Shown here: positions 3 to 53,836 of the stretch, piece after piece
How positions within the stretch are numbered: position 1 is the first letter of the stretch
Layout of the letters: each line of letters opens with the position of its first letter
Assembly (NCBI GenBank): GCA_964019335.1
Contig: OZ025742.1
Span: forward strand, 248,001-312,000
Source: Diplonema japonicum
Lineage: Eukaryota > Protista > Euglenozoa: Diplonemea
Direction: 5' to 3'
Length of the DNA stretch: 64,000 nucleotides
Notes under the pieces: model-generated
What the model was told of the DNA's origin: nothing
Database searches by the model: none
The model's input: only the letters and a program-made list of their open reading frames with translations
Translations under genes and position numbers: made by a program

Positions 3-2114
3 ATTGATGAAAATCTTTTATATGGGTGCAACAATCTAGAAACCATCAACTTGAATGCGATGACCAATCTTTCTTCCATTGGTGATGGCTTCTTGGAAGG
101 GTGCGTAAAACTAGAAACCATCGACTTGAATGCGATGACCAATCTTTCTTCTATTGGTCATTACTTCTTGTCTGAGTGCATAAAACTAGAAACCATCAAC
201 TTGAATGCGATGACCAATCTTTCTTCCATTGGTGATGGCTTCTTGGAAGGGTGCGTAAAACTAGAAACCATCGACTTGAATGCGATGACCAATCTTTCTT
301 CTATTGGTCATTACTTCTTGTCTGAGTGCATAAAACTAGAAACCATCAACTTGAATGCGATGACCAATCTTTCTTCCATTGGTAATCGCTTCTTGTTTAG
401 GTGCGTAAAACTAGAAACCATCGACTTGAATGCGATGACCAATCTTTCTTCTATTCGTAATTACTTCTTGTCTGAGTGCATAAAACTAGAAACCATCAAC
501 TTGAATGCGATGACCAATCTTTCCTCTATTGGTGATTACTTCTTGTCTGAGTGCGAAAAACTAGAAACCATCAACTTGAATGCGATGACCAATCTTTCTT
601 CTATTGGTGATCGCTTCTTGGAAGAGTGCGTAAAACTAGAAACCATCAACTTGAATGCGATGACCAATCTTTCTTCCATTGGTAATCGCTTCTTGTTTAG
701 GTGCGTAAAACTAGAAACCATCGACTTGAATGCGATGACCAATCTTTCTTCTATTCGTAATTACTTCTTGTCTGAGTGCATAAAACTAGAAACCATCAAC
801 TTGAATGCGATGACCAATCTTTCCTCTATTGGTGATTACTTCTTGTCTGAGTGCGAAAAACTAGAAACCATCAACTTGAATGCGATGACCAATCTTTCTT
901 CCATTGGTGATCACTTCTTGTTTAGGTGCGTAAAACTAGAAACCATCAACTTGAATGCGATGACCAATCTTTCTTCTATTGGTGATTGCTTCTTGTTTGG
1001 GTGCGTAAAACTAGAAACCATCAACTTGAATGCGATGACCAATCTTTCTTCTATTGGTAATTACTTCTTGTCTGGGTGCAAAAAACTAGAAACCATCAAC
1101 TTGAATGCGATGACCAATCTTTCTTCTATTGGTGATCGCTTCTTGTTTGGGTGCAAAAAACTAGAAACCATCGACTTGAATGCGATGACCAATCTTTCTT
1201 CTATTGGTGATTGCTTCTTGTTTGGGTGCGAAAAACTAGAAACCATCAACTTGAATGCGATGACCAATCTTTCTTCTATTGGTAATTACTTCTTGTCTGG
1301 GTGCAAAAAACTAGAAACCATCAACTTGAATGCGATGACCAATCTTTCTTCTACTGGTTATGGCTTCTTGTTTAGGTGCGTAAAACTAGAAACCATCGAC
1401 TTGAATGCGATGACCAATCTTTCTTCCATTGGTGATTGCTTCTTGTCTGGGTGCGTAAAACTAGAAACCATCAACTTGAATGCGATGACCAATCTTTCTT
1501 CCATTGGTGATTGCTTCTTGTCTGGGTGCGTAAAACTAGAAACCATCAACTTGAATGCGATGACCAATCTTTCTTCCATTGGTAATCGCTTCTTGTTTAG
1601 GTGCGTAAAACTAGAAACCATCAACTTGAATGCGATGACCAATCTTTCTTCCATTGGTGATCGCTTCTTGTTAGGGTGCGTAAAACTAGAAACCATCAAC
1701 TTGAATGCGATGACCAATCTTTCTTCTATTGGTGATTACTTCTTGGAGGGGTGCAAAAAACTAGAAACCATCGACTTGAATGCGATGACCAATCTTTCTT
1801 CCATTGGTAATCGCTTCTTGTTTAGGTGCGTAAAACTAGAAACCATCGACTTGAATGCGATGACCAATCTTTCTTCCATTGGTCATTGCTTCTTGTTAGG
1901 GTGCGAAAAACTAGAAACCATCAACTTGAATGCGATGACCAATCTTTCTTCCATTGGTGATCGCTTCTTGTTTGGGTGCGAAAAACTAGAAACCATCGAC
2001 TTGAATACGTTGACCAATCTTTCTTCCATTGGTGATGGCTTCTTGTCTGGGTGCGTAAAACTAGAATCTGTCGACTTGAATTTAAAAAGAAAAAAAAGAA
2101 AAGTCGGTGTTTAG
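3..2114 (+). CDS. Ubl-LRR array gene 1 (5' part outside window); 27 x 25-aa BspA/TpLRR-like modules
   Basis: Window opens in the cap LRR (IDENLLYGCNNLETINL) shared with the paralogs. 27 NAMTNLSSIGxxFLxxCxKLETI[D/N]L units follow, ending in the tail NLKRKKRKVGV. Confidence 0.9.
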   Translation: MDENLLYGCNNLETINLNAMTNLSSIGDGFLEGCVKLETIDLNAMTNLSSIGHYFLSECIKLETINLNAMTNLSSIGDGFLEGCVKLETIDLNAMTNLSSIGHYFLSECIKLETINLNAMTNLSSIGNRFLFRCVKLETIDLNAMTNLSSIRNYFLSECIKLETINLNAMTNLSSIGDYFLSECEKLETINLNAMTNLSSIGDRFLEECVKLETINLNAMTNLSSIGNRFLFRCVKLETIDLNAMTNLSSIRNYFLSECIKLETINLNAMTNLSSIGDYFLSECEKLETINLNAMTNLSSIGDHFLFRCVKLETINLNAMTNLSSIGDCFLFGCVKLETINLNAMTNLSSIGNYFLSGCKKLETINLNAMTNLSSIGDRFLFGCKKLETIDLNAMTNLSSIGDCFLFGCEKLETINLNAMTNLSSIGNYFLSGCKKLETINLNAMTNLSSTGYGFLFRCVKLETIDLNAMTNLSSIGDCFLSGCVKLETINLNAMTNLSSIGDCFLSGCVKLETINLNAMTNLSSIGNRFLFRCVKLETINLNAMTNLSSIGDRFLLGCVKLETINLNAMTNLSSIGDYFLEGCKKLETIDLNAMTNLSSIGNRFLFRCVKLETIDLNAMTNLSSIGHCFLLGCEKLETINLNAMTNLSSIGDRFLFGCEKLETIDLNTLTNLSSIGDGFLSGCVKLESVDLNLKRKKRKVGV

Positions 2115-6196: not shown

Positions 6197-8686
6197 ATGA
6201 ATGGAAAGAGAGAGGGATCAGGTGAAGAGGTGAACGATATGACAGTGTTCGTGAAGACGGGAGGCGGGGTTCACGATGTGGAAGTGTCGGGGAAGGAGAC
6301 GGTGGGGATCCTGTACAAGAAGGCGGGGTGTGCTGCTGGTTTACTCGAAGGCAAGTTCGAACTGGTTTGGGAGGGAGAGGTCCTGGACAAGAACGGGGGT
6401 GAAGATATCCAGGAACTCGGGCTCGTGGAGGGCAGCGTGGTCCATGTGGAGGCGAAGATGAGAACCGTTCAGTTGGAGGAGCTTGAGAGCTCAGAAGTGG
6501 TTTCAGAGCTTGAGGAGCTTGTGACAGCTGACCCTGAGCTGGTTCTGGTGGTGGAGGTGGGGAACTCGCCAGCTGTCGAAGTCTTGTCCATGAAGACGAC
6601 GGTCCTTCCTTCCGGACTTCGGTTCCTCGTTGTCACCGACTCCACAGGCTGTGTTACAAGGATAGGCTCTTGGTTTCTTGAAGAGTGCGACCACCTGACG
6701 TCTGTTGATCTCATCCTCCCCAATGTTTCCACCATTGATGAAAATCTTTTATATGGGTGCAACAATCTAGAAACCATCAACTTGAATGCGATGACCAATC
6801 TTTCTTCCATTGGTGATGGCTTCTTGGAAGGGTGCGTAAAACTAGAAACCATCGACTTGAATGCGATGACCAATCTTTCTTCTATTGGTGATTACTTCTT
6901 GTCTGAGTGCATAAAACTAGAAACCATCAACTTGAATGCGATGACCAATCTTTCTTCTATTGGTCATTACTTCTTGTCTGGGTGCGAAAAACTAGAAACC
7001 ATCGACTTGAATGCGATGACCAATCTTTCTTCCATTGGTAATCGCTTCTTGTTTGGGTGCGAAAAACTAGAAACCATCGACTTGAATGCGATGACCAATC
7101 TTTCTTCCATTGGTAATCGCTTCTTGTTTGGGTGCGAAAAACTAGAAACCATCGACTTGAATGCGATGACCAATCTTTCTTCCATTGGTGATCGCTTCTT
7201 GTTTAGGTGCGTAAAACTAGAAACCATCAACTTGAATGCGATGACCAATCTTTCTTCTATTGGTCATTACTTCTTGTCTGGGTGCGAAAAACTAGAAACC
7301 ATCGACTTGAATGCGATGACCAATCTTTCTTCCATTGGTAATCGCTTCTTGTCTGGGTGCGTAAAACTAGAAACCATCGACTTGAATGCGATGACCAATC
7401 TTTCTTCCATTGGTAATCGCTTCTTGTTTAGGTGCGTAAAACTAGAAACCATCAACTTGAATGCGATGACCAATCTTTCTTCTATTGGTCATTACTTCTT
7501 GTCTGGGTGCGAAAAACTAGAAACCATCGACTTGAATGCGATGACCAATCTTTCTTCCATTGGTGATCGCTTCTTGTTTAGGTGCGTAAAACTAGAAACC
7601 ATCAACTTGAATGCGATGACCAATCTTTCTTCTATTGGTGATGACTTCTTGTTTGGGTGCGTAAAACTAGAAACCATCGACTTGAATGCGATGACCAATC
7701 TTTCTTCTATTGGTCATTACTTCTTGTCTGGGTGCGAAAAACTAGAAACCATCGACTTGAATGCGATGACCAATCTTTCTTCTATTGGTGATGGCTTCTT
7801 GGAAGGGTGCGTAAAACTAGAAACCATCAACTTGAATGCGATGACCAATCTTTCTTCCATTGGTAATCGCTTCTTGTTAGGGTGCGAAAAACTAGAAACC
7901 ATCAACTTGAATGCGATGACCAATCTTTCTTCCATTGGTCATTGCTTCTTGTTTGGGTGCGTAAAACTAGAAACCATCGACTTGAATGCGATGACCAATC
8001 TTTCTTCTATTGGTCATTACTTCTTGTCTGGGTGCGAAAAACTAGAAACCATCGACTTGAATGCGATGACCAATCTTTCTTCTATTGGTGATGGCTTCTT
8101 GGAAGGGTGCGTAAAACTAGAAACCATCGACTTGAATGCGATGACCAATCTTTCTTCCATTGGTTATCGCTTCTTGTTTAGGTGCGTAAAACTAGAAACC
8201 ATCAACTTGAATGCGATGACCAATCTTTCTTACATTGGTGATCGCTTCTTGTTTAGGTGCGTAAAACTAGAAACCATCAACTTGAATGCGATGACCAATC
8301 TTTCTTCCATTGGTGATTGCTTCTTGTCTGAGTGCGTAAAACTAGAAACCATCAACTTGAATGCGATGACCAATCTTTCTTCTATTGGTGATTACTTCTT
8401 GGAGGGGTGCGTAAAACTAGAAACCATCGACTTGAATGCGATGACCAATCTTTCTTCCATTGGTGATCGCTTCTTGGAAGGGTGCGTAAAACTAGAAACC
8501 ATCAACTTGAATGCGATGACCAATCTTTCTTCCATTGGTGATCGCTTCTTGTTTGGGTGCGAAAAACTAGAAACCATCGACTTGAATACGTTGACCAATC
8601 TTTCTTCCATTGGTGATGGCTTCTTGTCTGGGTGCGTAAAACTAGAATCTGTCGACTTGAATTTAAAAAGAAAAGTCGGTGTTTAG
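6197..8686 (+). CDS. Ubl-LRR array gene 2, 829 aa, 25 modules
   Basis: N-terminal MTVFVKTGGGVHDVEV...ELVWEGEVLD...IQELGLVEGSVVHV aligns by eye with ubiquitin (MQIFVKT...LIFAGKQLED...LSDYNIQKESTLHL). Length = 196-aa N-region + 25x25 aa + 8-aa tail. No signal peptide or TM helix. Confidence 0.92.
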   Translation: MNGKREGSGEEVNDMTVFVKTGGGVHDVEVSGKETVGILYKKAGCAAGLLEGKFELVWEGEVLDKNGGEDIQELGLVEGSVVHVEAKMRTVQLEELESSEVVSELEELVTADPELVLVVEVGNSPAVEVLSMKTTVLPSGLRFLVVTDSTGCVTRIGSWFLEECDHLTSVDLILPNVSTIDENLLYGCNNLETINLNAMTNLSSIGDGFLEGCVKLETIDLNAMTNLSSIGDYFLSECIKLETINLNAMTNLSSIGHYFLSGCEKLETIDLNAMTNLSSIGNRFLFGCEKLETIDLNAMTNLSSIGNRFLFGCEKLETIDLNAMTNLSSIGDRFLFRCVKLETINLNAMTNLSSIGHYFLSGCEKLETIDLNAMTNLSSIGNRFLSGCVKLETIDLNAMTNLSSIGNRFLFRCVKLETINLNAMTNLSSIGHYFLSGCEKLETIDLNAMTNLSSIGDRFLFRCVKLETINLNAMTNLSSIGDDFLFGCVKLETIDLNAMTNLSSIGHYFLSGCEKLETIDLNAMTNLSSIGDGFLEGCVKLETINLNAMTNLSSIGNRFLLGCEKLETINLNAMTNLSSIGHCFLFGCVKLETIDLNAMTNLSSIGHYFLSGCEKLETIDLNAMTNLSSIGDGFLEGCVKLETIDLNAMTNLSSIGYRFLFRCVKLETINLNAMTNLSYIGDRFLFRCVKLETINLNAMTNLSSIGDCFLSECVKLETINLNAMTNLSSIGDYFLEGCVKLETIDLNAMTNLSSIGDRFLEGCVKLETINLNAMTNLSSIGDRFLFGCEKLETIDLNTLTNLSSIGDGFLSGCVKLESVDLNLKRKVGV

Positions 8687-9769: not shown

Positions 9770-10260
9770 TAACCACTTCGTTCCGAATTTTTTTTCTTTC
9801 AAAAATGAAAAAATAAAGTGCTTTATTTTCCCTTGGGAAATATGGAAAACTTTATTACCCCACTCTCGTCACCAGGTGGTGGGGATAACATGGAAAGATA
9901 AAGAAGTACATCAGATGTGTTGTTCGCTGTTGACCTCCATGTTGGTCATCACCGGTAGCGCCCAAGTGGAAGAAGCGGGTTTGCAGCAAACTACACGGGC
10001 TCAGAATCTTGGTTACCCGGGGCGCCCCGGCTGGGGTTGAGCTGCACACCGCACGCATTAAGGACACGACGCAGAACGCAGAAGAAGCTACAGCTAGGCT
10101 GAGGTGCGCCCCCTGTAATCAAGTGCTTGTGCAGGGTGCCCCCACCGGCTTCCTTTAAATCATCGAGTTTATTTTTCCCGGCTCTAGCCAAAATTCCTTT
10201 AGAGGGAATCCAGAAAATAAATAAAAAAAAAAAGAAGAAAAAAAAAAAAAAAAAAAAAAA

Positions 10261-12606: not shown

Positions 12607-14886
12607 ATGAATGGAAAGAGAGAGGGATCAGGTGAAGAGGTGAACGATATGACAGTGTTCGTGAAGACGGGAGGCGGGGTTCACGATGTGGAAGTGTCGG
12701 GGAAGGAGACGGTGGGGATCCTGTACAAGAAGGCGGGGTGTGCTGCTGGTTTACTCGAAGGCAAGTTCGAACTGGTTTGGGAGGGAGAGGTCCTGGACAG
12801 GAACGGGGGTGAAGATATCCAGGAACTCGGGCTCGTGGAGGGCAGCGTGGTCTATGTGGAGGCGAAGAAGATGAGAACCGTTCAGCTGGAGGAGCTTGAG
12901 AGCTCAGAAGTGGTTTCAGAGCTTGAGGAGCTTGTGACAGCTGACCCTGAGCTGGTTCTGGTGGTGGAGGTGGGGAACTCGCCAGCTGTCGAAGTCTTGT
13001 CCATGAAGACGACGGTCCTTCCTTCCGGACTTCGGTTCCTCGTTGTCACCGACTCCACAGGCTGTGTTACAAGGATAGGCTCTGGGTTTCTTGAAGAGTG
13101 CGACCACCTGACGTCTGTTGATCTCATCCTCCCCAATGTTTCCACCATTGGTGAAAATCTTTTATATGAGTGCAAAAATCTAGAAACCATCAACTTGAAT
13201 GTGATGACCAATCTTTCTTCTATTGGTCATTGCTTCTTGTATGGGTGCGAAAAACTAGAAACCATCGACTTGAATACGTTGACCAATCTTTCTTCCATTG
13301 GTGATCGCTTCTTGTTTGAGTGCAAAAAACTAGAAACCATCGACTTGAATGCGATGACCAATCTTTCTTCCATTGGTGATGGCTTCTTGTCTGGGTGCGT
13401 AAAACTAGAAACCATCAACTTGAATGCGATGACCAATCTTTCTTCTATTGGTCATTGCTTCTTGTATGGGTGCGAAAAACTAGAAACCATCGACTTGAAT
13501 ACGTTGACCAATCTTTCTTCCATTGGTAATCGCTTCTTGTTTGAGTGCAAAAAACTAGAAACCATCGACTTGAATGCGATGACCAATCTTTCTTCCATTG
13601 GTAATCGCTTCTTGTCTTGGTGCGAAAAACTAGAAACCATCAACTTGAATGCGATGACCAATCTTTCTTCTATTGGTCATTGCTTCTTGTATGGGTGCGA
13701 AAAACTAGAAACCATCGACTTGAATACGTTGACCAATCTTTCTTCCATTGGTAATCGCTTCTTGTTTGAGTGCAAAAAACTAGAAACCATCGACTTGAAT
13801 GCGATGACCAATCTTTCTTCCATTGGTAATCGCTTCTTGTCTTGGTGCGAAAAACTAGAAACCATCAACTTGAATGCGATGACCAATCTTTCTTCTATTG
13901 GTCATTGCTTCTTGTATGGGTGCGAAAAACTAGAAACCATCGACTTGAATACGTTGACCAATCTTTCTTCCATTGGTAATCGCTTCTTGTTTGAGTGCAA
14001 AAAACTAGAAACCATCGACTTGAATGCGATGACCAATCTTTCTTCCATTGGTAATCGCTTCTTGTCTTGGTGCGAAAAACTAGAAACCATCAACTTGAAT
14101 GCGATGACCAATCTTTCTTCTATTGGTCATTGCTTCTTGTATGGGTGCGAAAAACTAGAAACCATCGACTTGAATACGTTGACCAATCTTTCTTCCATTG
14201 GTAATCGCTTCTTGTTTGAGTGCAAAAAACTAGAAACCATCGACTTGAATGCGATGACCAATCTTTCTTCCATTGGTAATCGCTTCTTGTCTTGGTGCGA
14301 AAAACTAGAAACCATCAACTTGAATGCGATGACCAATCTTTCTTCTATTGGTCATTTCTTCTTGTATGGGTGCGAAAAACTAGAAACCATCGACTTGAAT
14401 ACGTTGACCAATCTTTCTTCCATTGGTGATAGCTTCTTGTCTGGGTGCGAAAAACTAGAAACCATCGACTTGAATACGTTGACCAATCTTTCTTCCATTG
14501 GTGATCGCTTCTTGTTTGAGTGCAAAAAACTAGAAACCATCAACTTGAATGCGATGACCAATCTTTCTTCCATTGGTGATGGCTTCTTGGGAGGGTGCGT
14601 AAAACTAGAAACCATCAACTTGAATGCGATGACCAATCTTTCTTCTATTGGTCATTGCTTCTTGTATGGGTGTGAAAAACTAGAAACCATCGACTTGAAT
14701 ACGTTGACCAATCTTTCTTCCATTGGTGATCGCTTCTTGTCTGGGTGCGAAAAGCTAGAAACCATTGACTTGAATGCGATGACCAATCTTTCTTCCATTG
14801 GTGATGGCTTCTTGGAGGGGTGCGTAAAACTAGAAACTGTCGACTTGAATTTAAAAAGAAAAAAAAAAAGAAAAGTCGGTGTTTAG
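12607..14886 (+). CDS. Ubl-LRR array gene 3, 759 aa, 22 modules, divergent allele set
   Basis: Same architecture. Dominated by a 3-module higher-order repeat (HC-YG / NR-FE / NR-SW). Tail NLKRKKKRKVGV. Confidence 0.92.
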   Translation: MNGKREGSGEEVNDMTVFVKTGGGVHDVEVSGKETVGILYKKAGCAAGLLEGKFELVWEGEVLDRNGGEDIQELGLVEGSVVYVEAKKMRTVQLEELESSEVVSELEELVTADPELVLVVEVGNSPAVEVLSMKTTVLPSGLRFLVVTDSTGCVTRIGSGFLEECDHLTSVDLILPNVSTIGENLLYECKNLETINLNVMTNLSSIGHCFLYGCEKLETIDLNTLTNLSSIGDRFLFECKKLETIDLNAMTNLSSIGDGFLSGCVKLETINLNAMTNLSSIGHCFLYGCEKLETIDLNTLTNLSSIGNRFLFECKKLETIDLNAMTNLSSIGNRFLSWCEKLETINLNAMTNLSSIGHCFLYGCEKLETIDLNTLTNLSSIGNRFLFECKKLETIDLNAMTNLSSIGNRFLSWCEKLETINLNAMTNLSSIGHCFLYGCEKLETIDLNTLTNLSSIGNRFLFECKKLETIDLNAMTNLSSIGNRFLSWCEKLETINLNAMTNLSSIGHCFLYGCEKLETIDLNTLTNLSSIGNRFLFECKKLETIDLNAMTNLSSIGNRFLSWCEKLETINLNAMTNLSSIGHFFLYGCEKLETIDLNTLTNLSSIGDSFLSGCEKLETIDLNTLTNLSSIGDRFLFECKKLETINLNAMTNLSSIGDGFLGGCVKLETINLNAMTNLSSIGHCFLYGCEKLETIDLNTLTNLSSIGDRFLSGCEKLETIDLNAMTNLSSIGDGFLEGCVKLETVDLNLKRKKKRKVGV

Positions 14887-18257: not shown

Positions 18258-19772
18258 ATGAATGGAAAGAGAGAGGGATCAGGTGAAGAGGTGAACGATA
18301 TGACAGTGTTCGTGAAGACGGGAGGCGGGGTTCACGATGTGGAAGTGTCGGGGAAGGAGACGGTGGGGATCCTGTACAAGAAGGCGGGGTGTGCTGCTGG
18401 TTTACTCGAAGGCAAGTTCGAACTGGTTTGGGAGGGAGAGGTCCTGGACAGGAACGGGGGTGAAGATATCCAGGAACTCGGGCTCGTGGAGGGCAGCGTG
18501 GTCCATGTGGAGGCGAAGATGAGAACCGTTCAGCTGGAGGAGCTTGAGAGCTCAGAAGTGGTTTCAGAGCTTGAGGAGCTTGTGACAGCTGACCCTGAGC
18601 TGGTTCTGGTGGTGGAGGTGGGGAACTCGCCAGCTGTCGAAGTCTTGTCCATGAAGACGACGGTCCTTCCTTCCGGACTTCGGTTCCTCGTTGTCACCGA
18701 CTCCACAGGCTGTGTTACAAGGATAGGCTCTAGGTTTCTTGAAGAGTGCGACCACCTGACGTCTGTTGATCTCATCCTCCCCAATGTTTCCACCATTGAT
18801 GAAAATCTTTTATATGGGTGCAAAAATCTAGAAACCATCAACTTGAATGCGATGACCAATCTTTCTTCCATTGGTGATGGCTTCTTGTTTGGGTGCGAAA
18901 AACTAGAAACCATCGACTTGAATGCGATGACCAATCTTTCTTCCATTGGTGATCGCTTCTTGTTTGGGTGCGTAAAACTAGAAACCATCAACTTGAATGC
19001 GATGACCAATCTTTCTTCCATTGGTAATCGCTTCTTGTTTGGGTGCGTAAAACTAGAAACCATCAACTTGAATGCGATGACCAATCTTTCTTCCATTGGT
19101 CATTACTTCTTGTCTGGGTGCGTAAAACTAGAAACCATCAACTTGAATGCGATGACCAATCTTTCTTCCATTGGTGATGGCTTCTTGGAAGGGTGCGTAA
19201 AACTAGAAACCATCAACTTGAATGCGATGACCAATCTTTCTTCTATTGGTGATGGCTTCTTGGAAGGGTGCGTAAAACTAGAAACCATCAACTTGAATGC
19301 GATGACCAATCTTTCTTACATTGGTGATCACTTCTTAGAAGGGTGCGAAAAACTAGAAACCATCGACTTGAATGCGATGACCAATCTTTCTTCCATTGGT
19401 GATTGCTTCTTGTCTGAGTGCGTAAAACTAGAAACCATCAACTTGAATGCGATGACCAATCTTTCTTCTATTGGTGATTACTTCTTGGAGGGGTGCGAAA
19501 AACTAGAAACCATCGACTTGAATGCGATGACCAATCTTTCTTCCATTGGTGATCGCTTCTTGGAAGGGTGCGTAAAACTAGAAACCATCAACTTGAATGC
19601 GATGACCAATCTTTCTTCCATTGGTGATCGCTTCTTGTTTGGGTGCGAAAAACTAGAAACCATCGACTTGAATACGTTGACCAATCTTTCTTCCATTGGT
19701 GATGGCTTCTTGTCTGGGTGCGTAAAACTAGAATCTGTCGACTTGAATTTAAAAAGAAAAGTCGGTGTTTAG
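18258..19772 (+). CDS. Ubl-LRR array gene 4, 504 aa, 12 modules
   Basis: Same N-region and tail; 12 modules counted directly. Confidence 0.92.
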   Translation: MNGKREGSGEEVNDMTVFVKTGGGVHDVEVSGKETVGILYKKAGCAAGLLEGKFELVWEGEVLDRNGGEDIQELGLVEGSVVHVEAKMRTVQLEELESSEVVSELEELVTADPELVLVVEVGNSPAVEVLSMKTTVLPSGLRFLVVTDSTGCVTRIGSRFLEECDHLTSVDLILPNVSTIDENLLYGCKNLETINLNAMTNLSSIGDGFLFGCEKLETIDLNAMTNLSSIGDRFLFGCVKLETINLNAMTNLSSIGNRFLFGCVKLETINLNAMTNLSSIGHYFLSGCVKLETINLNAMTNLSSIGDGFLEGCVKLETINLNAMTNLSSIGDGFLEGCVKLETINLNAMTNLSYIGDHFLEGCEKLETIDLNAMTNLSSIGDCFLSECVKLETINLNAMTNLSSIGDYFLEGCEKLETIDLNAMTNLSSIGDRFLEGCVKLETINLNAMTNLSSIGDRFLFGCEKLETIDLNTLTNLSSIGDGFLSGCVKLESVDLNLKRKVGV

Positions 19773-24096: not shown

Positions 24097-25986
24097 ATGA
24101 ATGGAAAGAGAGAGGGATCAGGTGAAGAGGTGAACGATATGACAGTGTTCGTGAAGACGGGAGGCGGGGTTCACGATGTGGAAGTGTCGGGGAAGGAGAC
24201 GGTGGGGATCCTGTACAAGAAGGCGGGGTGTGCTGCTGGTTTACTCGAAGGCAAGTTCGAACTGGTTTGGGAGGGAGAGGTCCTGGACAGGAACGGGGGT
24301 GAAGATATCCAGGAACTCGGGCTCGTGGAGGGCAGCGTGGTCCATGTGGAGGCGAAGATGAGAACCGTTCAGTTGGAGGAGCTTGAGAGCTCAGAAGTGG
24401 TTTCAGAGCTTGAGGAGCTTGTGACAGCTGACCCTGAGCTGGTTCTGGTGGTGGAGGTGGGGAACTCGCCAGCTGTCGAAGTCTTGTCCATGAAGACGAC
24501 GGTCCTTCCTTCCGGACTTCGGTTCCTCGTTGTCACCGACTCCACAGGCTGTGTTACAAGGATAGGCTCTTGGTTTCTTGAAGAGTGCGACCACCTGACG
24601 TCTGTTGATCTCATCCTCCCCAATGTTTCCACCATTGATGAAAATCTTTTATATGGGTGCAAAAATCTAGAAACCATCAACTTGAATGCGATGACCAATC
24701 TTTCTTCTATTGGTGATCACTTCTTGTTTGGGTGCAGAAAACTAGAAACCATCAACTTGAATGCGATGACCAATCTTTCTTCCATTGGTAATGGCTTCTT
24801 GTTTAGGTGCGTAAAACTAGAAACCATCGACTTGAATGCGATGACCAATCTTTCTTCTATTGGTGATTACTTCTTGTCTGGGTGCATAAAACTAGAAACC
24901 ATCAACTTGAATGCGATGACCAATCTTTCCTCTATTGGTGATTACTTCTTGTCTGAGTGCATAAAACTAGAAACCATCAACTTGAATGCGATGACCAATC
25001 TTTCTTCCATTGGTGATCGCTTCTTGTTTGGGTGCAAAAAACTAGAAACCATCGACTTGAATGCGATGACCAATCTTTCTTCCATTGGTAATCGCTTCTT
25101 GTTTAGGTGCGTAAAACTAGAAACCATCAACTTGAATGCGATGACCAATCTTTCTTCTATTGGTCATTACTTCTTGTCTGGGTGCGAAAAACTAGAAACC
25201 ATCGACTTGAATGCGATGACCAATCTTTCTTCCATTGGTAATCGCTTCTTGTTTGGGTGCGAAAAACTAGAAACCATCGACTTGAATGCGATGACCAATC
25301 TTTCTTCTATTGGTGATGACTTCTTGTTTGGGTGCGTAAAACTAGAAACCATCAACTTGAATGCGATGACCAATCTTTCTTCTATTGGTCATTACTTCTT
25401 GTCTGGGTGCGAAAAACTAGAAACCATCGACTTGAATGCGATGACCAATCTTTCTTCCATTGGTAATCGCTTCTTGTTTGGGTGCGAAAAACTAGAAACC
25501 ATCGACTTGAATGCGATGACCAATCTTTCTTCTATTGGTGATGACTTCTTGTTTGGGTGCGTAAAACTAGAAACCATCAACTTGAATGCGATGACCAATC
25601 TTTCTTCTATTGGTCATTACTTCTTGTCTGGGTGCGAAAAACTAGAAACCATCAACTTGAATGCGATGACCAATCTTTCTTCTATTGGTGATTACTTCTT
25701 GGAGGGGTGCGAAAAACTAGAAACCATCGACTTGAATGCGATGACCAATCTTTCTTCCATTGGTGATCGCTTCTTGGAAGGGTGCGTAAAACTAGAAACC
25801 ATCAACTTGAATGCGATGACCAATCTTTCTTCCATTGGTGATCGCTTCTTGTTTGGGTGCGAAAAACTAGAAACCATCGACTTGAATACGTTGACCAATC
25901 TTTCTTCCATTGGTGATGGCTTCTTGTCTGGGTGCGTAAAACTAGAATCTGTCGACTTGAATTTAAAAAGAAAAGTCGGTGTTTAG
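24097..25986 (+). CDS. Ubl-LRR array gene 5, 629 aa, 17 modules
   Basis: Same architecture; length = 504 + 5x25 aa. Confidence 0.92.
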   Translation: MNGKREGSGEEVNDMTVFVKTGGGVHDVEVSGKETVGILYKKAGCAAGLLEGKFELVWEGEVLDRNGGEDIQELGLVEGSVVHVEAKMRTVQLEELESSEVVSELEELVTADPELVLVVEVGNSPAVEVLSMKTTVLPSGLRFLVVTDSTGCVTRIGSWFLEECDHLTSVDLILPNVSTIDENLLYGCKNLETINLNAMTNLSSIGDHFLFGCRKLETINLNAMTNLSSIGNGFLFRCVKLETIDLNAMTNLSSIGDYFLSGCIKLETINLNAMTNLSSIGDYFLSECIKLETINLNAMTNLSSIGDRFLFGCKKLETIDLNAMTNLSSIGNRFLFRCVKLETINLNAMTNLSSIGHYFLSGCEKLETIDLNAMTNLSSIGNRFLFGCEKLETIDLNAMTNLSSIGDDFLFGCVKLETINLNAMTNLSSIGHYFLSGCEKLETIDLNAMTNLSSIGNRFLFGCEKLETIDLNAMTNLSSIGDDFLFGCVKLETINLNAMTNLSSIGHYFLSGCEKLETINLNAMTNLSSIGDYFLEGCEKLETIDLNAMTNLSSIGDRFLEGCVKLETINLNAMTNLSSIGDRFLFGCEKLETIDLNTLTNLSSIGDGFLSGCVKLESVDLNLKRKVGV

Positions 25987-27335: not shown

Positions 27336-28997
27336 ATGAATGGAAAGAGAGAGAGATCAGGTGAAGAGGTGAACGATATGACAGTGTTCGTGAAGACGGG
27401 AGGCGGGGTTCACGATGTGGAAGTGTCGGGGAAGGAGACGGTGGGGATCCTGTACAAGAAGGCGGGGTGTGCTGCTGGTTTACTCGAAGGCAAGTTCGAA
27501 CTGGTTTGGGAGGGAGAGGTCCTGGACAAGAACGGGGGTGAAGATATCCAGGAACTCGGGCTCGTGGAGGGCAGCGTGGTCCATGTGGAGGCGAAGATGA
27601 GAACCGTTCAGCTGGAGGAGCTTGAGAGCTCAGAAGTGGTTTCAGAGCTTGAGGAGCTTGTGACAGCTGACCCTGAGCTGGTTCTGGTGGTGGAGGTGGG
27701 GAACTCGCCAGCTGTCGAAGTCTTGTCCATGAAGACGACGGTCCTTCCTTCCGGACTTCGGTTCCTCGTTGTCACCGACTCCACAGGCTGTGTTACAAGG
27801 ATAGGCTCTAGGTTTCTTCAAGAGTGCGACCACCTGACGTCTGTTGATCTCATCCTCCCCAATGTTTCCACCATTGATGAAAATCTTTTATATGGGTGCA
27901 AAAATCTAGAAACCATCAACTTGAATGCGATGACCAATCTTTCTTCCATTGGTAATGGCTTCTTGTTTAGGTGCGTAAAACTAGAAACCATCGACTTGAA
28001 TGCGATGACCAATCTTTCTTCTATTGGTGATTACTTCTTGTCTGAGTGCATAAAACTAGAAACCATCAACTTGAATGCGATGACCAATCTTTCTTCCATT
28101 GGTGATCGCTTCTTGTTTGGGTGCAAAAAACTAGAAACCATCGACTTGAATGCGATGACCAATCTTTCTTCCATTGGTGATCGCTTCTTGTTTAGGTGCG
28201 TAAAACTAGAAACCATCAACTTGAATGCGATGACCAATCTTTCTTCTATTGGTGATTACTTCTTGTCTGAGTGCATAAAACTAGAAACCATCAACTTGAA
28301 TGCGATGACCAATCTTTCTTCCATTGGTGATGGCTTCTTGTTTGGGTGCGTAAAACTAGAAACCATCAACTTGAATGCGATGACCAATCTTTCTTCCATT
28401 GGTAATCGCTTCTTGTTTAGGTGCGTAAAACTAGAAACCATCAACTTGAATGCGATGACCAATCTTTCTTACATTGGTGATCGCTTCTTAGAAGGGTGCG
28501 AAAAACTAGAAACCATCGACTTGAATGCGATGACCAATCTTTCTTCCATTGGTAATCGCTTCTTGTTTTGGTGCGTAAAACTAGAAACCATCAACTTGAA
28601 TGCGATGACCAATCTTTCTTCTATTGGTGATTACTTCTTGGAGAGGTGCAAAAAACTAGAAACCATCGACTTGAATGCGATGACCAATCTTTCTTCCATT
28701 GGTGATAGCTTCTTGTTAGGGTGCGAAAAACTAGAAAGCATCGACTTGAATACGTTGACCAATCTTTCTTCCATTGGTGATGGCTTCTTGTCTGGGTGCA
28801 AAAAACTAGAAACCATCGACTTGAATGCGATGACCAATCTTTCTTCTACTGGTGATAGCTTCTTGGAAGGGTGCAAAAAACTAGAAACCATCAACTTGAA
28901 TGCGATGACCAATCTTTCTTCCATTGGTGATCGCTTCTTCTGGTCGTTGGTGCAAACTTGGAGGTCTTCCGTGCGGGCAAAGAAAGCCCCTGCTTGA
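27336..28997 (+). pseudogene. Ubl-LRR array gene 6, 3'-truncated in module 14 by an inserted element
   Basis: 13 full modules, then LRR homology stops at ~28939 (gatcgcttctt|ctggtcg). The normal tail and 3' flank are absent and the frame ends in foreign sequence. Confidence 0.85.
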
Positions 28998-32320: not shown

Positions 32321-34585
32321 ATGAATGGAAAGAGAGAGGGATCAGGTGAAGAGGTGAACGATATGACAGTGTTCGTGAAGACGGGAGGCGGGGTTCACGA
32401 TGTGGAAGTGTCGGGGAAGGAGACGGTGGGGATCCTGTACAAGAAGGCGGGGTGTGCTGCTGGTTTACTCGAAGGCAAGTTCGAACTGGTTTGGGAGGGA
32501 GAGGTCCTGGACAGGAACGGGGGTGAAGATATCCAGGAACTCGGGCTCGTGGAGGGCAGCGTGGTCCATGTGGAGGCGAAGATGAGAACCGTTCAGTTGG
32601 AGGAGCTTGAGAGCTCAGAAGTGGTTTCAGAGCTTGAGGAGCTTGTGACAGCTGACCCTGAGCTGGTTCTGGTGGTGGAGGTGGGGAACTCGCCAGCTGT
32701 CGAAGTCTTGTCCATGAAGACGACGGTCCTTCCTTCCGGACTTCGGTTCCTCGTTGTCACCGACTCCACAGGCTGTGTTACAAGGATAGGCTCTTGGTTT
32801 CTTGAAGAGTGCGACCACCTGACGTCTGTTGATCTCATCCTCCCCAATGTTTCCACCATTGATGATAATCTTTTATATGGGTGCAAAAATCTAGAAACCA
32901 TCAACTTGAATGCGATGACCAATCTTTCTTCCATTGGTAATCGCTTCTTGTTTGGGTGCGAAAAACTAGAAACCATCGACTTGAATGCGATGACCAATCT
33001 TTCTTCTATTGGTGATTACTTCTTGTCTGAGTGCATAAAACTAGAAACCATCAACTTGAATGCGATGACCAATCTTTCTTCCATTGGTGATCGCTTCTTG
33101 TTTGGGTGCGAAAAACTAGAAACCATCAACTTGAATGCGATGACCAATCTTTCTTCTACTGGTGATGGCTTCTTGTCTGGGTGCGTAAAACTAGAAACCA
33201 TCGACTTGAATGCGATGACCAATCTTTCTTCCATTGGTGATGGCTTCTTGTCTGAGTGCATAAAACTAGAAACAATCAACTTGAATGCGATGACCAATCT
33301 TTCTTCTACTGGTGATGGCTTCTTGTTTGGGTGCGAAAAACTAGAAACCATCGACTTGAATGCGATGACCAATCTTTCTTCCATTGGTGATTGCTTCTTG
33401 TTTGGGTGCGAAAAACTAGAAACCATCGACTTGAATGCGATGACCAATCTTTCTTCCATTGGTAATCGCTTCTTGTCTGGGTGCGTAAAACTAGAAACCA
33501 TCGACTTGAATGCGATGACCAATCTTTCTTCTATTGGTGATTACTTCTTGTCTGAGTGCATAAAACTAGAAACCATCAACTTGAATGCGATGACCAATCT
33601 TTCTTCTACTGGTGATGGCTTCTTGTCTGGGTGCGTAAAACTAGAAACCATCGACTTGAATGCGATGACCAATCTTTCTTCCATTGGTAATCGCTTCTTG
33701 TTTAGGTGCGTAAAACTAGAAACCATCAACTTGAATGCGATGACCAATCTTTCTTCCATTGGTGATCGCTTCTTGTTAGGGTGCGTAAAACTAGAAACCA
33801 TCAACTTGAATGCGATGACCAATCTTTCTTCTATTGGTGATGACTTCTTGGAGGGGTGCAAAAAACTAGAAACCATCGACTTGAATGCGATGACCAATCT
33901 TTCTTCTACTGGTGATAGCTTCTTGTCTGGGTGCGTAAAACTAGAAACCATCGACTTGAATGCGATGACCAATCTTTCTTCCATTGGTAATCGCTTCTTG
34001 TTTGGGTGCGTAAAACTAGAAACCATCGACTTGAATGCGATGACCAATCTTTCTTCCATTGGTGATCGCTTCTTGTTTAGGTGCGTAAAACTAGAAACCA
34101 TCAACTTGAATGCGATGACCAATCTTTCTTCTATTGGTGATTACTTCTTGTCTGGGTGCGTAAAACTAGAAACCATCAACTTGAATGCGATGACCAATCT
34201 TTCTTCCATTGGTGATCGCTTCTTGTTTGGGTGCGTAAAACTAGAAACCATCAACTTGAATGCGATGACCAATCTTTCTTCTATTGGTGATGGCTTCTTG
34301 GAAGGGTGCGTAAAACTAGAAACCATCAACTTGAATGCGATGACCAATCTTTCTTCCATTGGTAATCGCTTCTTGTTTAGGTGCGTAAAACTAGAAACCA
34401 TCAACTTGAATGCGATGACCAATCTTTCTTACATTGGTGATCGCTTCTTAGAAGGGTGCGAAAAACTAGAAACCATCGACTTGAATGCGATGACCAATCT
34501 TTCTTCCATTGGTGATCGCTTCTTGGAAGGGTGCGTAAAACTAGAATCTGTCGACTTGAATTTAAAAAGAAAAGTCGGTGTTTAG
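32321..34585 (+). CDS. Ubl-LRR array gene 7, 754 aa, 22 modules
   Basis: Same architecture; length = 504 + 10x25 aa; enriched in STG variants. Confidence 0.92.
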   Translation: MNGKREGSGEEVNDMTVFVKTGGGVHDVEVSGKETVGILYKKAGCAAGLLEGKFELVWEGEVLDRNGGEDIQELGLVEGSVVHVEAKMRTVQLEELESSEVVSELEELVTADPELVLVVEVGNSPAVEVLSMKTTVLPSGLRFLVVTDSTGCVTRIGSWFLEECDHLTSVDLILPNVSTIDDNLLYGCKNLETINLNAMTNLSSIGNRFLFGCEKLETIDLNAMTNLSSIGDYFLSECIKLETINLNAMTNLSSIGDRFLFGCEKLETINLNAMTNLSSTGDGFLSGCVKLETIDLNAMTNLSSIGDGFLSECIKLETINLNAMTNLSSTGDGFLFGCEKLETIDLNAMTNLSSIGDCFLFGCEKLETIDLNAMTNLSSIGNRFLSGCVKLETIDLNAMTNLSSIGDYFLSECIKLETINLNAMTNLSSTGDGFLSGCVKLETIDLNAMTNLSSIGNRFLFRCVKLETINLNAMTNLSSIGDRFLLGCVKLETINLNAMTNLSSIGDDFLEGCKKLETIDLNAMTNLSSTGDSFLSGCVKLETIDLNAMTNLSSIGNRFLFGCVKLETIDLNAMTNLSSIGDRFLFRCVKLETINLNAMTNLSSIGDYFLSGCVKLETINLNAMTNLSSIGDRFLFGCVKLETINLNAMTNLSSIGDGFLEGCVKLETINLNAMTNLSSIGNRFLFRCVKLETINLNAMTNLSYIGDRFLEGCEKLETIDLNAMTNLSSIGDRFLEGCVKLESVDLNLKRKVGV

Positions 34586-53745: not shown

Positions 53746-53836
53746 TAACATCATTCTATAGAAACCACTTTTAGTATCCCCCCCCCCTTTTTTTTTTCTT
53801 TCTAGCTGTCTATCTTTTAAGGCGGTGGGAGGGAAA

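Follow-up and report, generated by a model that had tools for sequence, protein, structure and literature searches.

Diversifying selection on a few codons of each repeat in an expanded ubiquitin-like/LRR protein family of Diplonema japonicum

Introduction

Close precedents exist for the proteins described here, namely the hypervariable LRR proteins of Flavobacterium and Dictyostelium and the repeats of fungal NLR proteins. The BspA-like LRR locus of Flavobacterium psychrophilum (Altae-Tran et al. 2020, PMC10392669) resembles the Diplonema genes in its tandem arrangement, its near-identical repeats of ~22-25 residues, the variable repeat number, the few hypervariable positions that modelling assigned to one side of the solenoid, and the extensive recombination. 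It differs in that the proteins are bacterial, secreted and surface-anchored (signal peptide, T9SS signal) and have no ubiquitin-like head, and in that gene fragments joined at sites of microhomology are strewn across the locus, whereas the Diplonema family is eukaryotic, apparently intracellular, and represented by at least 150 head matches over many chromosomes. Among protists, Dictyostelium purpureum has a family of >90 LRR proteins with variable repeat number and a variable di-residue (PMC10392669). The motif is of the IP22 type as cited there, whereas the Diplonema repeats match Pfam LRR_5, and the single variable di-residue of Dictyostelium contrasts with two di-residues, one further residue and a D/N switch in Diplonema. 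That study reports no ubiquitin-like head and gives no selection statistics. A very large eukaryotic expansion of BspA/TpLRR proteins with differing repeat number is also known from Trichomonas vaginalis (TvBspA, 911 genes; PMC2843621), but these proteins are mostly divergent, ~190 of them have a transmembrane domain with a cytoplasmic tail that points to surface roles, and neither a ubiquitin-like head nor a site-confined hypervariability has been reported for them.

In the HNWD genes het-e, het-d and het-r of Podospora anserina (PMC2873952), the repeats are homogenised by concerted evolution within and between loci, four codons per repeat on the interaction surface are under strong positive selection, and shuffling creates new specificities for a role in non-self recognition. 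These repeats form WD40 beta-propellers that are preceded by a NACHT NTPase and a HET death domain, whereas in Diplonema an LRR solenoid follows a ubiquitin-like domain, without any NTPase. The homogenisation at the DNA level, the positive selection on few codons and the repeat shuffling are all found in Diplonema, and the gene analysed here works like the fungal NLR-type conserved-repeat receptors without being a member of them.

Lamprey variable lymphocyte receptors carry their diversity on the concave beta-strand and assemble it somatically. They likewise combine LRR cassettes into diverse binders, whereas in Diplonema the concave strand is constant and the diversity is germline-encoded and spread over paralogs. 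Diplonemids rank among the most abundant marine eukaryotes but also among the least understood ones, not least in the way in which they recognise symbionts, prey or viruses.

Results

Gene and protein architecture

The analysed window comprises 64,000 nucleotides of Diplonema japonicum contig OZ025742.1. Its gene at 6197-8686 is organised as follows:

6197..8686, + strand: complete ORF of 829 aa, with a ubiquitin-like head, linker and N-cap, 25 LRR units and a short basic tail
6245..6460, + strand: putative ubiquitin-like (beta-grasp) domain, aa 17-88
6461..6763, + strand: helical linker and N-terminal cap (two degenerate repeats), aa 89-189, AF2 pLDDT ~90
6764..8638, + strand: 25 tandem 75-nt units, each a 25-aa BspA-type LRR (Pfam LRR_5, 6.7e-106)
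6839..6913, + strand: example unit (unit 2), KLETIDLNAMTNLSSIGDYFLSECI
8639..8686, + strand: incomplete 26th repeat with the basic tail KLESVDLNLKRKVGV, followed by the stop codon

An alternative start codon of the ORF is M15 (6239), the one used by transcriptome relatives, which begin with MTVFVKT. The Pfam ubiquitin match of the head (E 1.8e-4, 21.6 bits) stays below the cut-off of 25.4 bits, which is exceeded by the relative P0002 with 27.2 bits, and AF2 predicts, at a low confidence (pLDDT 30-50), a strand-strand-helix-strand...strand succession with a beta-grasp-like order. As the head lacks a C-terminal GG, it would be an integral ubiquitin-like domain and no conjugatable modifier. In this protein, Pfam detects only ubiquitin and LRR families, with no NACHT or NB-ARC NTPase, and an Rfam search of the window gave no match.

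By eye, the 829-aa protein has no hydrophobic N-terminus, signal or transmembrane stretch, and the N-terminus is the ubiquitin-like domain, which differs from the secreted or surface location that is usual for BspA proteins. The proteins of the family appear to be intracellular. Related paralogs end with KRKKRKVGV, and the basic N- and C-terminal motifs could indicate a nuclear or membrane location.

Family size, expression and integrity of the arrays

Besides this gene, the window contains seven paralogs:

51..2114, + strand: paralogous array of 27 units, with its head just upstream of the window
12607..14886, + strand: paralog of 759 aa, with a 225-nt higher-order repeat (HCYGE NRFEK NRSWE) present five times
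18258..19772, + strand: paralog of 504 aa with 12 units, used for the first AF2 model
24097..25986, + strand: paralog of 629 aa with 17 units
27336..28997, + strand: paralog with a broken-off array that passes into unrelated sequence near 28940
32321..34585, + strand: paralog of 754 aa with 22 units
38524..40488, + strand: paralog of 654 aa with 18 units

In the D. japonicum genome, at least 150 matches to the head domain (151 counted) are found on many chromosomes, and the gene is a member of a large, recently expanded family of this species. Transcriptomes of D. japonicum and D. ambulator contain family members, including one protein that is 100% identical to a genomic member, and the transcriptome protein closest to the young subfamily of the gene 6197-8686 is only 67% identical.

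In principle, the arrays might be tandem DNA, selfish or without function, in which one frame merely happens to be open, or they might be an assembly artefact. Tandem copies of a unit that lacks stop codons in one frame necessarily form a long open array, so the open arrays as such are compatible with this explanation, as are the truncation of the paralog at 27336-28997 and the 67% identity of the nearest transcriptome protein to the young subfamily. But tandem DNA of this kind would not account for eight intact head-to-tail ORFs with conserved starts and tails in common, for 158 units without a single indel, for the low piN/piS of scaffold and head (0.32 and ~0.45, see below), or for the presence of family members in the transcriptomes of two Diplonema species, and the published assembly was made from HiFi reads with Hi-C scaffolding (PMC13598402), which speaks against an artefact. 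We hence regard this explanation as very unlikely.

Fold of the repeat domain

Pfam LRR_5 matches the protein in eight stretches with 349.7 bits (cut-off 27.7), and the units, in the form LxxIxLxxxxxLxxIGxxFLxxCxx, agree with the LRR_5/TpLRR consensus L-x-x-[IL]-x-[IL]-...-I-G-x-x-A/F-F/L-x-x-C-x-x, which spans ~23 residues. In fold, the protein comes closest to the solved LRR_5 structure 4fs7 (Z 34.4, rmsd 3.4 A over 363 aligned residues; Foldseek, VIA), to which the alignment begins at residue 93 (VIA), followed by 4gt6, 4h09 and the TpLRR structure 6mlx (Z 20.5, rmsd 3.0 A), 4fs7 and 6mlx being among the best of 994 chains compared. With 25 residues, the unit is a length variant that exceeds that of 4fs7 by two residues, which are accommodated in the NAMTN loop.

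The LRR parts of the 12-repeat paralog and of the full 25-repeat protein are predicted by AF2 with a pLDDT of 80-97. In every repeat, the models place a strand at unit positions 4-6, then a bridge (15-16) and finally coil (17-25). The variable residues belong to the coil that leads from the convex-side bridge to the next concave strand, where they are flanked by conserved core residues, and as they are non-core, they are predicted to stack into one continuous exposed band; its exposure and contiguity are deduced from the secondary structure, the core periodicity of the LRRs and the chemistry of the residues. Such a band along the convex-to-descending flank of the solenoid would be the putative ligand-binding surface. 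The variable sites are populated by a mix of residues (Tyr, Arg, Asp, His, Ser, Gly, Trp, Glu) similar to that of binding sites, and the ligands are most likely diverse proteins.

Variation within the repeat unit

The array at 6764-8638 is exactly periodic (25 x 75 nt), free of indels and in frame with the ORF. Its units have the form K-L-E-T-I-[D/N]-L-N-A-M-T-N-L-S-S-I-G-x1-x2-F-L-x3-x4-C-x5. With s = 6764 + 75k as the start of unit k (0-24), the D/N codon 6 is at s+15..s+17, and the variable codons are at s+51..s+56 (18-19), s+63..s+68 (22-23) and s+72..s+74 (25). In unit 2, the hypervariable codons are thus 6890-6895 (DY), 6902-6907 (SE) and 6911-6913 (I), and the D/N codon is 6854-6856.

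Per-column tables were compiled from the 158 units of the eight paralogous arrays of the window, among which there are zero indels. The amino-acid entropy reaches 1.45-2.29 bits at positions 18, 19, 22, 23 and 25, 1.0 bit at position 6 (D/N), and at most 0.54 bits at the remaining positions. The sequence-only reading had placed all variation in x1x2, x3x4 and x5, which agrees with these peaks if the D/N site of codon 6 is added. It had also described a ~44-nt core that is nearly invariant even at silent sites, a codon 18 of the form NAT with all four first bases, and a constant LxxIxL strand, and all of this was recovered: the exceptions in the core are the R (D/N) site and a linked change from GCG ATG to ACG TTG in 14 units, codon 18 starts with G, C, A or T and codon 19 is N[G/A/(T)]C, and in the strand, positions 3 and 4 are invariant while position 6 is only D or N. 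Its state counts need a correction, as they had been assigned to 6782-8660, where the array alone has nine x1x2 pairs, six x3x4 pairs and three x5 states; they hold for the window, with the same 16 x1x2 pairs and V, E, K, I and R at x5, except that there are 14 instead of 13 x3x4 pairs. In most genes, the last repeat can be recognised by the TL variant at positions 9-10. At each of codons 18, 19, 23 and 25, hardly any unit departs from the common third base (157-158 of the 158 units agree), and the sole common silent polymorphism is TCC/TCT at codon 15 (96:61).

Fixed variable nucleotide positions with invariant neighbours could also be written by a targeted mutational process instead of selection, such as DGR-like mutagenic retrohoming, deaminase hotspots or CpG decay, and the codons CGC, TGC and CAC at position 19 could partly be CpG transitions. 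DGR-type adenine mutagenesis was rejected because there is no adenine specificity, the second base A of codon 18 being invariant (157/158) while the first base varies, so that the chemistry does not fit. CpG-driven variation was rejected as well, since the CpG-bearing GCG codon 9 is intact in 386 of 429 units, with zero GCA or GTG. Moreover, several sites show all four bases, no reverse transcriptase or template-repeat arrangement was found alongside the arrays, and the pattern follows the codon position (non-synonymous only), which is invisible to a mutational process. We therefore consider such a mechanism extremely improbable.

Selection on the hypervariable codons

Selection was assessed with 429 young units from 33 genes, comparing the five codons 18, 19, 22, 23 and 25 with the other 20 in the counts of codon states and with the scaffold in piN/piS. 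When codon states seen at least three times are counted, the hypervariable codons have 30 extra amino-acid states and one synonymous state, against 10 and nine at the other 20 codons (Fisher p = 2.9e-4), a concentration that greatly exceeds what chance would yield; the sequence-only reading had called the changes overwhelmingly non-synonymous. At the five codons, piN is 0.379, whereas piS is 0.057 at the same codons and 0.054 when pooled, resulting in a pooled piN/piS of 6.6-7.0 (gene-bootstrap 95% interval 5.7-8.0); the individual codons range from 4.2 to 10.1, codon 6 has 3.4, and all others have at most 1.4. The array 6764-8638 alone gives the same picture, with a hypervariable piN of 0.347 and a piS of 0.039-0.045. 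The scaffold has a piN/piS of 0.32, a value to be read in the light of two filters, as unit extraction demanded conserved scaffold residues and the young class was picked by core identity, both of which depress scaffold piN and core piS somewhat. The third positions of the hypervariable codons are outside both filters, and piS is still 0.057 there. Between the heads of 12 young paralogs, the silent divergence is 0.017 and piN/piS is ~0.45, and in the cap and linker of 12 near-identical paralogs, the few differences are found at the x-equivalent sites 159, 162, 187 and 189.

As a tree-free measure, piN/piS is insensitive to recombination, and a ratio well above 1 at the five codons in combination with 0.32 in the scaffold supports diversifying selection on a stripe outside the concave face, as the sequence-only reading had proposed. 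Five codons per repeat and the D/N switch at codon 6 are kept diverse by positive diversifying selection.

If the x positions were instead a drifting, unconstrained surface, with concerted evolution and purifying selection holding the rest, no adaptive diversification would be needed. The variable sites are indeed the x positions of the BspA/TpLRR consensus that vary in every relative examined, and gene conversion is clearly active in the arrays, but drift predicts piN to be similar to piS, and not 6.6-7 times higher. The third bases of the same codons are nearly invariant, yet they vary in older paralogs (piS 0.2-0.6), and gene conversion would be unable to homogenise third bases and to spare the first and second bases at a distance of 1-2 nt. 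Drift alone is hence quite improbable. Codon bias was rejected as the cause of the invariant third bases, because their variation in older paralogs shows that it is no bar to change at these sites. The most variable positions of older paralogs are the same as in the young units; the oldest subfamilies, with heads that are 35-55% identical, are thinly sampled in this comparison.

Cassettes and array turnover

The 429 young units contain 29 x1x2 pairs and 27 x3x4 pairs, and 153 distinct five-residue cassettes, 75 of which are singletons. The rarefaction curve is still rising, and Chao1 estimates at least 253 cassettes. Mutual information among x1 to x5 amounts to 0.15-0.53 bits and that between x2 and the silent codon-15 marker to 0.28 bits, whereas it is much weaker across unit boundaries. 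The variable codons move together in cassettes of 31 nt that are partly linked. The number of repeats and the order of the cassettes vary from paralog to paralog, with first and last repeats fixed, and the arrays contain higher-order repeats and conserved terminal modules. The ~44-nt invariant core may serve as homology tract for unequal crossing-over and gene conversion, which would homogenise the scaffold and at the same time shuffle cassettes within and between arrays.

As a testable alternative, the sequence-only reading had suggested that the modules might follow a code like those of TALE or PPR proteins, with one repeat for one unit of a polymer (nucleic acid, peptide or glycan). In the form assessed here, x1x2, x3x4 and x5 would do the reading along a linear polymer, as in TALE, PUF or PPR repeats. 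Near-identical tandem repeats with few variable positions that stack in register, a variable repeat number and shuffled modules are features that the Diplonema arrays share with TALE-like readers, and the KRK-rich basic tails would fit a nuclear location. Proteins of the TALE, PUF and PPR types are built as alpha-helical solenoids, use a small and discrete alphabet, and have been proven to bind one base per module. The Diplonema family deviates in fold and alphabet: its fold is a BspA-type LRR beta-solenoid and not an alpha-solenoid that wraps nucleic acids, and its alphabet is open-ended, as 153 cassettes in 429 units are unsaturated (Chao1 at least 253), with five sites per repeat that are strongly co-inherited and do not form a single independent specificity element. 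We know of no one-repeat-one-unit reader with an LRR beta-solenoid fold, and the nearest relatives are F-box-LRR proteins, in which the LRR is expected to hold protein substrates. A code has already been the subject of published speculation for the LRR proteins of Dictyostelium purpureum (PMC10392669), whose first hypervariable position has D, H, N and Y, as x1 does. If there were such a code in Diplonema, the stacked variable residues of a repeat would touch a single unit of an extended polymer (single-stranded nucleic acid, peptide or glycan), the cassette string would spell the target, and the family would be the first LRR-based programmable reader, but on the evidence of alphabet, linkage, fold and relatives this has only a very slight chance of being true, and the family looks like one of fast-evolving binding proteins, not like a TALE-like code reader.

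Discussion

Relation to bacterial F-box-LRR proteins

Relatives of the protein are encoded in bacteria, namely in Holosporales MAGs, as proteins with an F-box, and in Candidatus Bodocaedibacter vickermanii. BLASTP against bacterial relatives gave 33-36% identity (E 7e-67), and the region preceding the LRR is 33% identical to a bacterial homolog over 123 aa (E 1e-13). By sequence comparison, the LRR module is similar to F-box-LRR proteins from intracellular bacteria of the Holosporales type. The similarity to such proteins (e.g. MFN9000557.1) includes the 25-residue repeat with IG-xx-FL-xx-C-x, a homologous pre-LRR cap (LSMK..LP.GL..L..D..G.V..I..FL), a domain of the ubiquitin system that is attached in both, and the variation itself, as bacterial homologs with the same 25-residue repeat vary most at the same positions (18, 19, 22 and 23). 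The bacterial proteins differ in having an F-box as partner domain, far more divergent repeats, no homogenisation at the DNA level, and a bacterial genomic context. The N-terminal part of the bacterial proteins, comprising F-box and linker, had no match in the host genome, and a contig scan matched only the MAG from which its query came.

Possible role of the family

We consider it probable that the gene belongs to an expanded family of proteins with ubiquitin-like domain and BspA-type LRRs, in which the diversified stripe of the repeats is a putative ligand-binding surface. What could be the function of the ubiquitin-like head in such a protein? Speculatively, and with the odds rather against it, the head would couple the bound partner to the proteasome or the ubiquitin system, and the family would then be a repertoire of germline-encoded recognition proteins that takes part in a conflict, for instance with the cytoplasmic Holosporaceae of the host.

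D. japonicum permanently carries two cytoplasmic bacteria, Candidatus Cytomitobacter primus and Candidatus Nesciobacter abundans, with genomes of ~0.62 Mb. The cytoplasmic Holosporaceae of this host encode LRR proteins beside T6SS genes (bioRxiv 10.1101/719211; PMC13598402). The tie between the gene family and the endosymbionts is circumstantial, and a repertoire that recognises and degrades by means of its ubiquitin-like tag and that co-evolves with homologous F-box-LRR effectors of the cytoplasmic Holosporaceae is an unlikely reading, although a less extreme and more probable one than the polymer code.

As a diversified binding-protein family, the Diplonema proteins are strong candidates for a system of intracellular recognition in a host of two cytoplasmic bacteria, and the homologous F-box-LRR proteins in relatives of the symbionts provide a testable entry to a host-symbiont conflict at the ubiquitin-proteasome interface. 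Beside fungal NLRs and the LRRs of Flavobacterium and Dictyostelium, the family is a third case, by fold and lineage, of a homogenised scaffold with few hypervariable codons. The regular scaffold with at least 150 natural cassette types may also be of interest for the engineering of repeat-protein binders.

BspA-type LRRs are widespread in bacteria, and small bacterial genomes (contigs of 0.49-0.66 Mb) carry many homologs.

A ubiquitin-like head fused to homogenised leucine-rich repeats

The gene under study is the following:

6197-8686, + strand: ORF of 829 aa, with a ubiquitin-like head, a linker and cap, and 25 LRR units of 75 nt

Tandem Repeats Finder reports its array with a 75-nt period, 25.3 copies, 92% matches and 0 indels, and anchoring on a fixed word places 25 units at exact 75-nt spacing in it and 7 further arrays of the same kind within the 64-kb window, all on the + strand. 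The in-frame unit reads K-L-E-T-I-[D/N]-L-N-A-M-T-N-L-S-S-I-G-x1-x2-F-L-x3-x4-C-x5, in which x1 to x5 are the hypervariable codons 18, 19, 22, 23 and 25, and the Pfam match of the array is LRR_5, the BspA-type leucine-rich repeat (6.7e-106, 349.7 bits). The first 88 residues give a sub-threshold match to Pfam ubiquitin (21.6 bits, cut-off 25.4) and carry the ubiquitin landmarks FVKT..., ...VVHVEAK and ...LVWEG..., the last of which aligns with the LIFAG of ubiquitin. A terminal GG was sought in this head and is absent, and inspection by eye of the 829-aa protein revealed neither a signal peptide nor a membrane segment. We regard it as probable that the family consists of intracellular binders with a variable lateral stripe on which diversifying selection acts and which cassette shuffling diversifies, a cassette being the residues x1-x5 of one unit.

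Variation is concentrated in five codons

The sequence-only reading of the array at 6782-8660 had proposed computing the per-site entropy of aligned 75-mers, and in all 158 units of the window, taken unfiltered, the amino-acid entropy indeed peaks at positions 18, 19, 22, 23 and 25 (1.5, 2.3, 2.1, 1.5 and 1.8 bits), followed by the D/N switch at position 6 (1.0 bit), with at most 0.54 bits at the remaining positions. The codon patterns noted from the sequence hold as well: codon 18 is NAT with all four bases at the first position, and codon 19 is N[G/A]C with a second-base T in 2 cases. The third base is invariant in 157-158 of the 158 units at codons 18, 19, 23 and 25, and TCC/TCT at codon 15 is the sole frequent silent polymorphism anywhere in the unit. 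The core of about 44 nt that had been described as almost invariant even at silent sites varies only at the D/N base and in an uncommon linked ACG-TTG form, which marks the last repeat in most genes. The 16 x1x2 pairs that had been counted are reproduced exactly window-wide, but the query array alone holds only 9 x1x2, 6 x3x4 and 3 x5 states. With D/H/N/Y at x1, Y/R/G/C/S/N at x2, S/F/E/Y at x3, G/R/E/W at x4 and E/V/K/I at x5, the residue mix is of the kind usually seen at exposed binding sites.

A search of the D. japonicum genome gives 151 matches to the ubiquitin-like head, with identities from 100% down to 35%. Retrieval of 70 head loci, among which the oldest paralogs are thinly represented, gave 581 in-frame units from 61 genes, and a young set of 429 units comes from the 33 of these genes that match the repeat core of the query array at 96% identity or more. 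Nei-Gojobori pairwise diversity was computed per column, which is not misled by recombination because it is tree-free. In the young units, with a pooled piS of 0.054, piN/piS is 4.7, 9.3, 10.1, 4.2 and 6.8 at codons 18, 19, 22, 23 and 25, 3.4 at codon 6 and at most 1.4 at the remaining codons. The five codons pooled have a piN of 0.379 and an own-codon piS of 0.057, a ratio of 6.6-7.0 (gene-bootstrap 95% interval 5.7-8.0), against 0.32 (0.26-0.41) for the scaffold, which bears out the diversifying selection that had been suspected. Only units with the conserved scaffold residues were extracted, and core identity served to class the genes, both of which slightly lower scaffold diversity; the third bases of the hypervariable codons lie outside both filters, and the unfiltered table of 158 units agrees. 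The query array alone gives a matching picture at its hypervariable codons (0.347 vs 0.039-0.045). If only codon states seen at least 3 times are counted, the five hypervariable codons account for 30 additional amino-acid states against a single additional synonymous codon, and the other 20 codons for 10 against 9 (Fisher p = 2.9e-4), in line with the earlier remark that the changes are overwhelmingly non-synonymous.

The family expansion is recent: silent-site divergence among the heads of 12 young paralogs is only 1.7%, and the rare differences among them in the cap pseudo-repeat are located at x-equivalent sites. In older subfamilies (136 units, piS 0.27) codons 18, 19, 22, 23 and 25 are again the most variable, with ratios of 1.4-2.1 that are uncorrected for saturation. 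Codon bias was considered as a source of the invariant third bases in young arrays and was rejected, since the third bases of the hypervariable codons do vary in these older subfamilies.

Three other explanations of the variation are contradicted by these data. Neutral drift at free surface positions does not agree with a piN several-fold above piS while neighbouring silent sites stay unchanged, and a targeted mutator that writes the variation is at odds with the base pattern at the variable sites. That the arrays are junk DNA or an assembly artefact conflicts with the purifying selection on scaffold and head and with the exactly conserved reading frame.

A predicted lateral band on the solenoid

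AlphaFold2 with a family alignment predicts a solenoid with high confidence both in a 12-repeat paralog (LRR pLDDT >90) and in the full 25-repeat query protein (LRR pLDDT 80-96); confidence is low for the ubiquitin-like head (pLDDT 30-50), which has a beta-grasp-like order of elements. Foldseek searches with VIA re-alignment rank solved LRR_5 proteins above other LRR classes, led by 4fs7 (Z 34.4, rmsd 3.4 A over 363 residues, from model residue 93) and followed by 4gt6, 4h09 and the Treponema TpLRR 6mlx. In the sequence alignment, the two additional residues of the 25-mer relative to 4fs7 fall in the NAMTN loop.

Each modelled repeat has a 3-residue strand (4-6) on the concave face, a 2-residue bridge (15-16) and an irregular stretch (17-25). 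The conserved hydrophobic positions 2, 5, 7, 10, 13, 16, 20/21 and 24 match the usual LRR core spacing, which leaves 18-19, 22-23 and 25 interspersed with core residues on the segment that leads from the convex side, along the descending flank, to the concave strand of the following repeat. As each variable position is expected to stack in register in an exactly periodic solenoid, these five positions should jointly form one lateral band. The model thereby supports the earlier suggestion of a stripe off the canonical concave face, with the variable positions outside strand 4-6 and E3, T4 and D/N6 conserved. These concave residues are kept even in paralogs with heads of about 50% identity and likewise in bacterial relatives (LTSVDL), and therefore look structural, or may bind something that is shared by all members.

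Proposed exchange of cassettes between units

Within a unit the five sites vary in a correlated way, with a mutual information of 0.15-0.53 bits (z = 8-29), and x2 is tied to the silent marker at codon 15 (0.28 bits, z = 31). Across unit boundaries, in either direction, only weak linkage is seen, barring a modest association of x5 with D/N. Sixty-five of 153 cassettes are present in at least two genes, higher-order repeats occur within arrays, for instance (HCYGE NRFEK NRSWE) x5 with a 225-nt period and 96% matches, and most paralogs have identical first and last modules around a middle of 12 to 27 units. The simplest reading of these sequence patterns would be unequal crossing-over and gene conversion with breakpoints within the invariant core. 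Such exchange would homogenise the scaffold and relocate cassettes of about 31 nt, and selection would keep point mutations that arise within them.

Known designs and the question of a code

Homogenised repeats with few hypervariable positions are not new as a design. Altae-Tran et al. described a Flavobacterium psychrophilum locus with up to 19 tandem genes for LRR surface proteins, whose hypervariable positions lie on one side of the solenoid, and, in Dictyostelium purpureum, over 90 LRR proteins in which a di-residue is hypervariable, its first position being mainly Y/D/H/N (PMC10392669). Concerted evolution together with positive selection on 4 surface codons is known from the WD40 repeats of Podospora NLRs (PMC2873952), and Trichomonas has 911 BspA-like genes (PMC2843621). 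In comparison with these systems, what is new here is the diplonemid lineage, the fusion to a ubiquitin-like head with an apparently intracellular location, the size and youth of the family, the quantitative evidence of selection, and the homology to F-box-LRR proteins from a bacterial group that inhabits D. japonicum. A literature search for a description of the D. japonicum ubiquitin-like LRR family found no paper.

Altae-Tran et al. likened the D. purpureum LRRs to TALEs and suggested a nucleic-acid reading (PMC10392669), and the sequence-only reading had similarly raised an RVD-like code of one repeat per polymer unit for the present arrays. Such a code is very unlikely: the open-ended cassette repertoire, the linkage between the five sites, the fold and the kind of relatives all argue away from it.

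Relatives in diplonemids and in bacteria

An exhaustive HMM search with the head yielded 359 proteins, and all 15 full-head matches that were looked up are transcriptome proteins, 14 from D. japonicum and 1 from D. ambulator. A 557-aa EukProt transcriptome protein of D. japonicum is 100% identical to one locus of the genome assembly. The family is thus at least partly expressed and older than the species. A near-identical transcript protein for the young subfamily was sought in the collection and not found, the best being 67% identical. A further protein, P0264 (379 aa, precomputed Pfam ubiquitin and LRR_5, on a 1.195-Mb ENA contig), probably represents another diplonemid copy of this architecture.

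The best named non-diplonemid matches are LRR proteins from Holosporales metagenome bins.

L071:1368-3404, L075:760-2370 and proteins P0013, P0014, P0017: Holosporales-type F-box-LRR, cap and 25-residue repeats homologous to the host family

P0013 has an N-terminal F-box (20.6 bits, cut-off 20.5), P0017 a weak N-terminal F-box-like match (16.8 bits, cut-off 24.3), and a related member of the order an F-box-like match just below cut-off (23.2 bits vs 24.3). Another named match is a protein of Candidatus Bodocaedibacter vickermanii, an endosymbiont of the kinetoplastid Bodo saltans. The bacterial proteins are built of the same 25-residue repeat, including IG-xx-FL-xx-C-x (33-36% identity over 350 aa, E 7e-67), in which positions 18, 19, 22 and 23 are again the most variable (2.1-3.3 bits). 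Homology extends to the stretch preceding the repeats (33% over 123 aa, E 1e-13), where LSMK..LP.GL..L..D..G.V..I..FL is the shared motif. The type is present in 7 of 23 genomes of the relevant GTDB order, with multiple copies in 4, and the neighbours of one such gene are ordinary bacterial genes. The bacterial N-terminal part was searched for in the D. japonicum genome and has no counterpart there. Several small ENA contigs of 0.49-0.66 Mb, an endosymbiont genome size, are each rich in F-box-LRR paralogs (including P0165-P0167, P0180, P0185, P0187, P0191, P0195 and P0198).

Two cytoplasmic Holosporaceae live permanently in D. japonicum, and their genomes have LRR protein genes adjoining type VI secretion genes (bioRxiv 10.1101/719211; PMC13598402). 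The assemblies of these two symbionts, a Cytomitobacter and a Nesciobacter, are GCA_951805245.1 and GCA_960610765.1. A preprint reporting no endosymbiotic gene transfer is on Rhynchopus, another host, and does not mention LRRs. As BspA-type LRRs are very widespread (2128 matches), the link between host and bacteria should not be over-read.

Proteins with integral ubiquitin-like domains include Rad23 and Dsk2, and the head of the present family might in a similar way couple to the proteasome or the ubiquitin system. By parallel with the bacterial F-box-LRR relatives, a conflict might be fought at the ubiquitin/proteasome interface. We advance this functional layer, coupling as well as conflict, only tentatively and consider it rather unlikely.

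Termini and neighbouring features

Proteins of older paralogs, as at loci L046, L063 and L035, begin with MNGKRKRS... or MKRKRS..., and the C-terminus of many is KRKKRKVGV, similar to a classical basic nuclear-localisation signal. In young genes these basic termini are weakened (GKREGS, 6197-6238; LKRKVGV, 8663-8683), and the related protein P0010 ends in CIVC. Judging from these termini, subfamilies may differ in localisation.

Features around the LRR genes of the window

3332-4321: Zeta_toxin-domain (P-loop kinase) gene, 329 aa, shorter than its paralogs (426, 510)
10127-11092 and 36031-36993: near-identical protein-kinase gene pair, each downstream of an LRR gene
11678-12439, - strand: piggyBac-type DDE transposase fragment (Pfam DDE_Tnp_1_7, 4.3e-17)
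20941-22221: second Zeta_toxin-domain gene
27336-28997: sixth LRR paralog, frame lost after about 13 units, end ...IGDRFFWSLVQTWRSS
28958-31345: 795-aa ORF with no Pfam match, abutting the sixth LRR paralog
42068-43600: third Zeta_toxin-domain gene, with a fused glutaredoxin domain
43784-43978: simple repeat (TTTTTA), about 32 copies
50823-51431: host F-box gene (F-box-like, 31.8 bits), few kb downstream of the LRR cluster
53825-60106: 2093-aa ORF, weak reprolysin-like metalloprotease matches only (E about 0.007)
61448-61678: simple repeat (GAGACA), about 38 copies

The sixth paralog looks like an LRR gene that was truncated by insertion. The three Zeta_toxin genes (E 4.7e-14 to 1.5e-24) are interspersed among the LRR genes. 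The LRR-kinase block, about 26 kb long, represents a segmental duplication, and the same poly(A)/poly(T) tracts flank both kinase genes (10212 and 36116; 11254 and 37155). As far as tested, the host F-box gene has no sequence relationship with the bacterial F-box-LRR proteins. The piggyBac-type fragment has the same C-terminal peptide as related short ORFs near 5140-5490, and perfect poly(A)/poly(T) tracts of 30-56 nt are numerous in the intergenic stretches.
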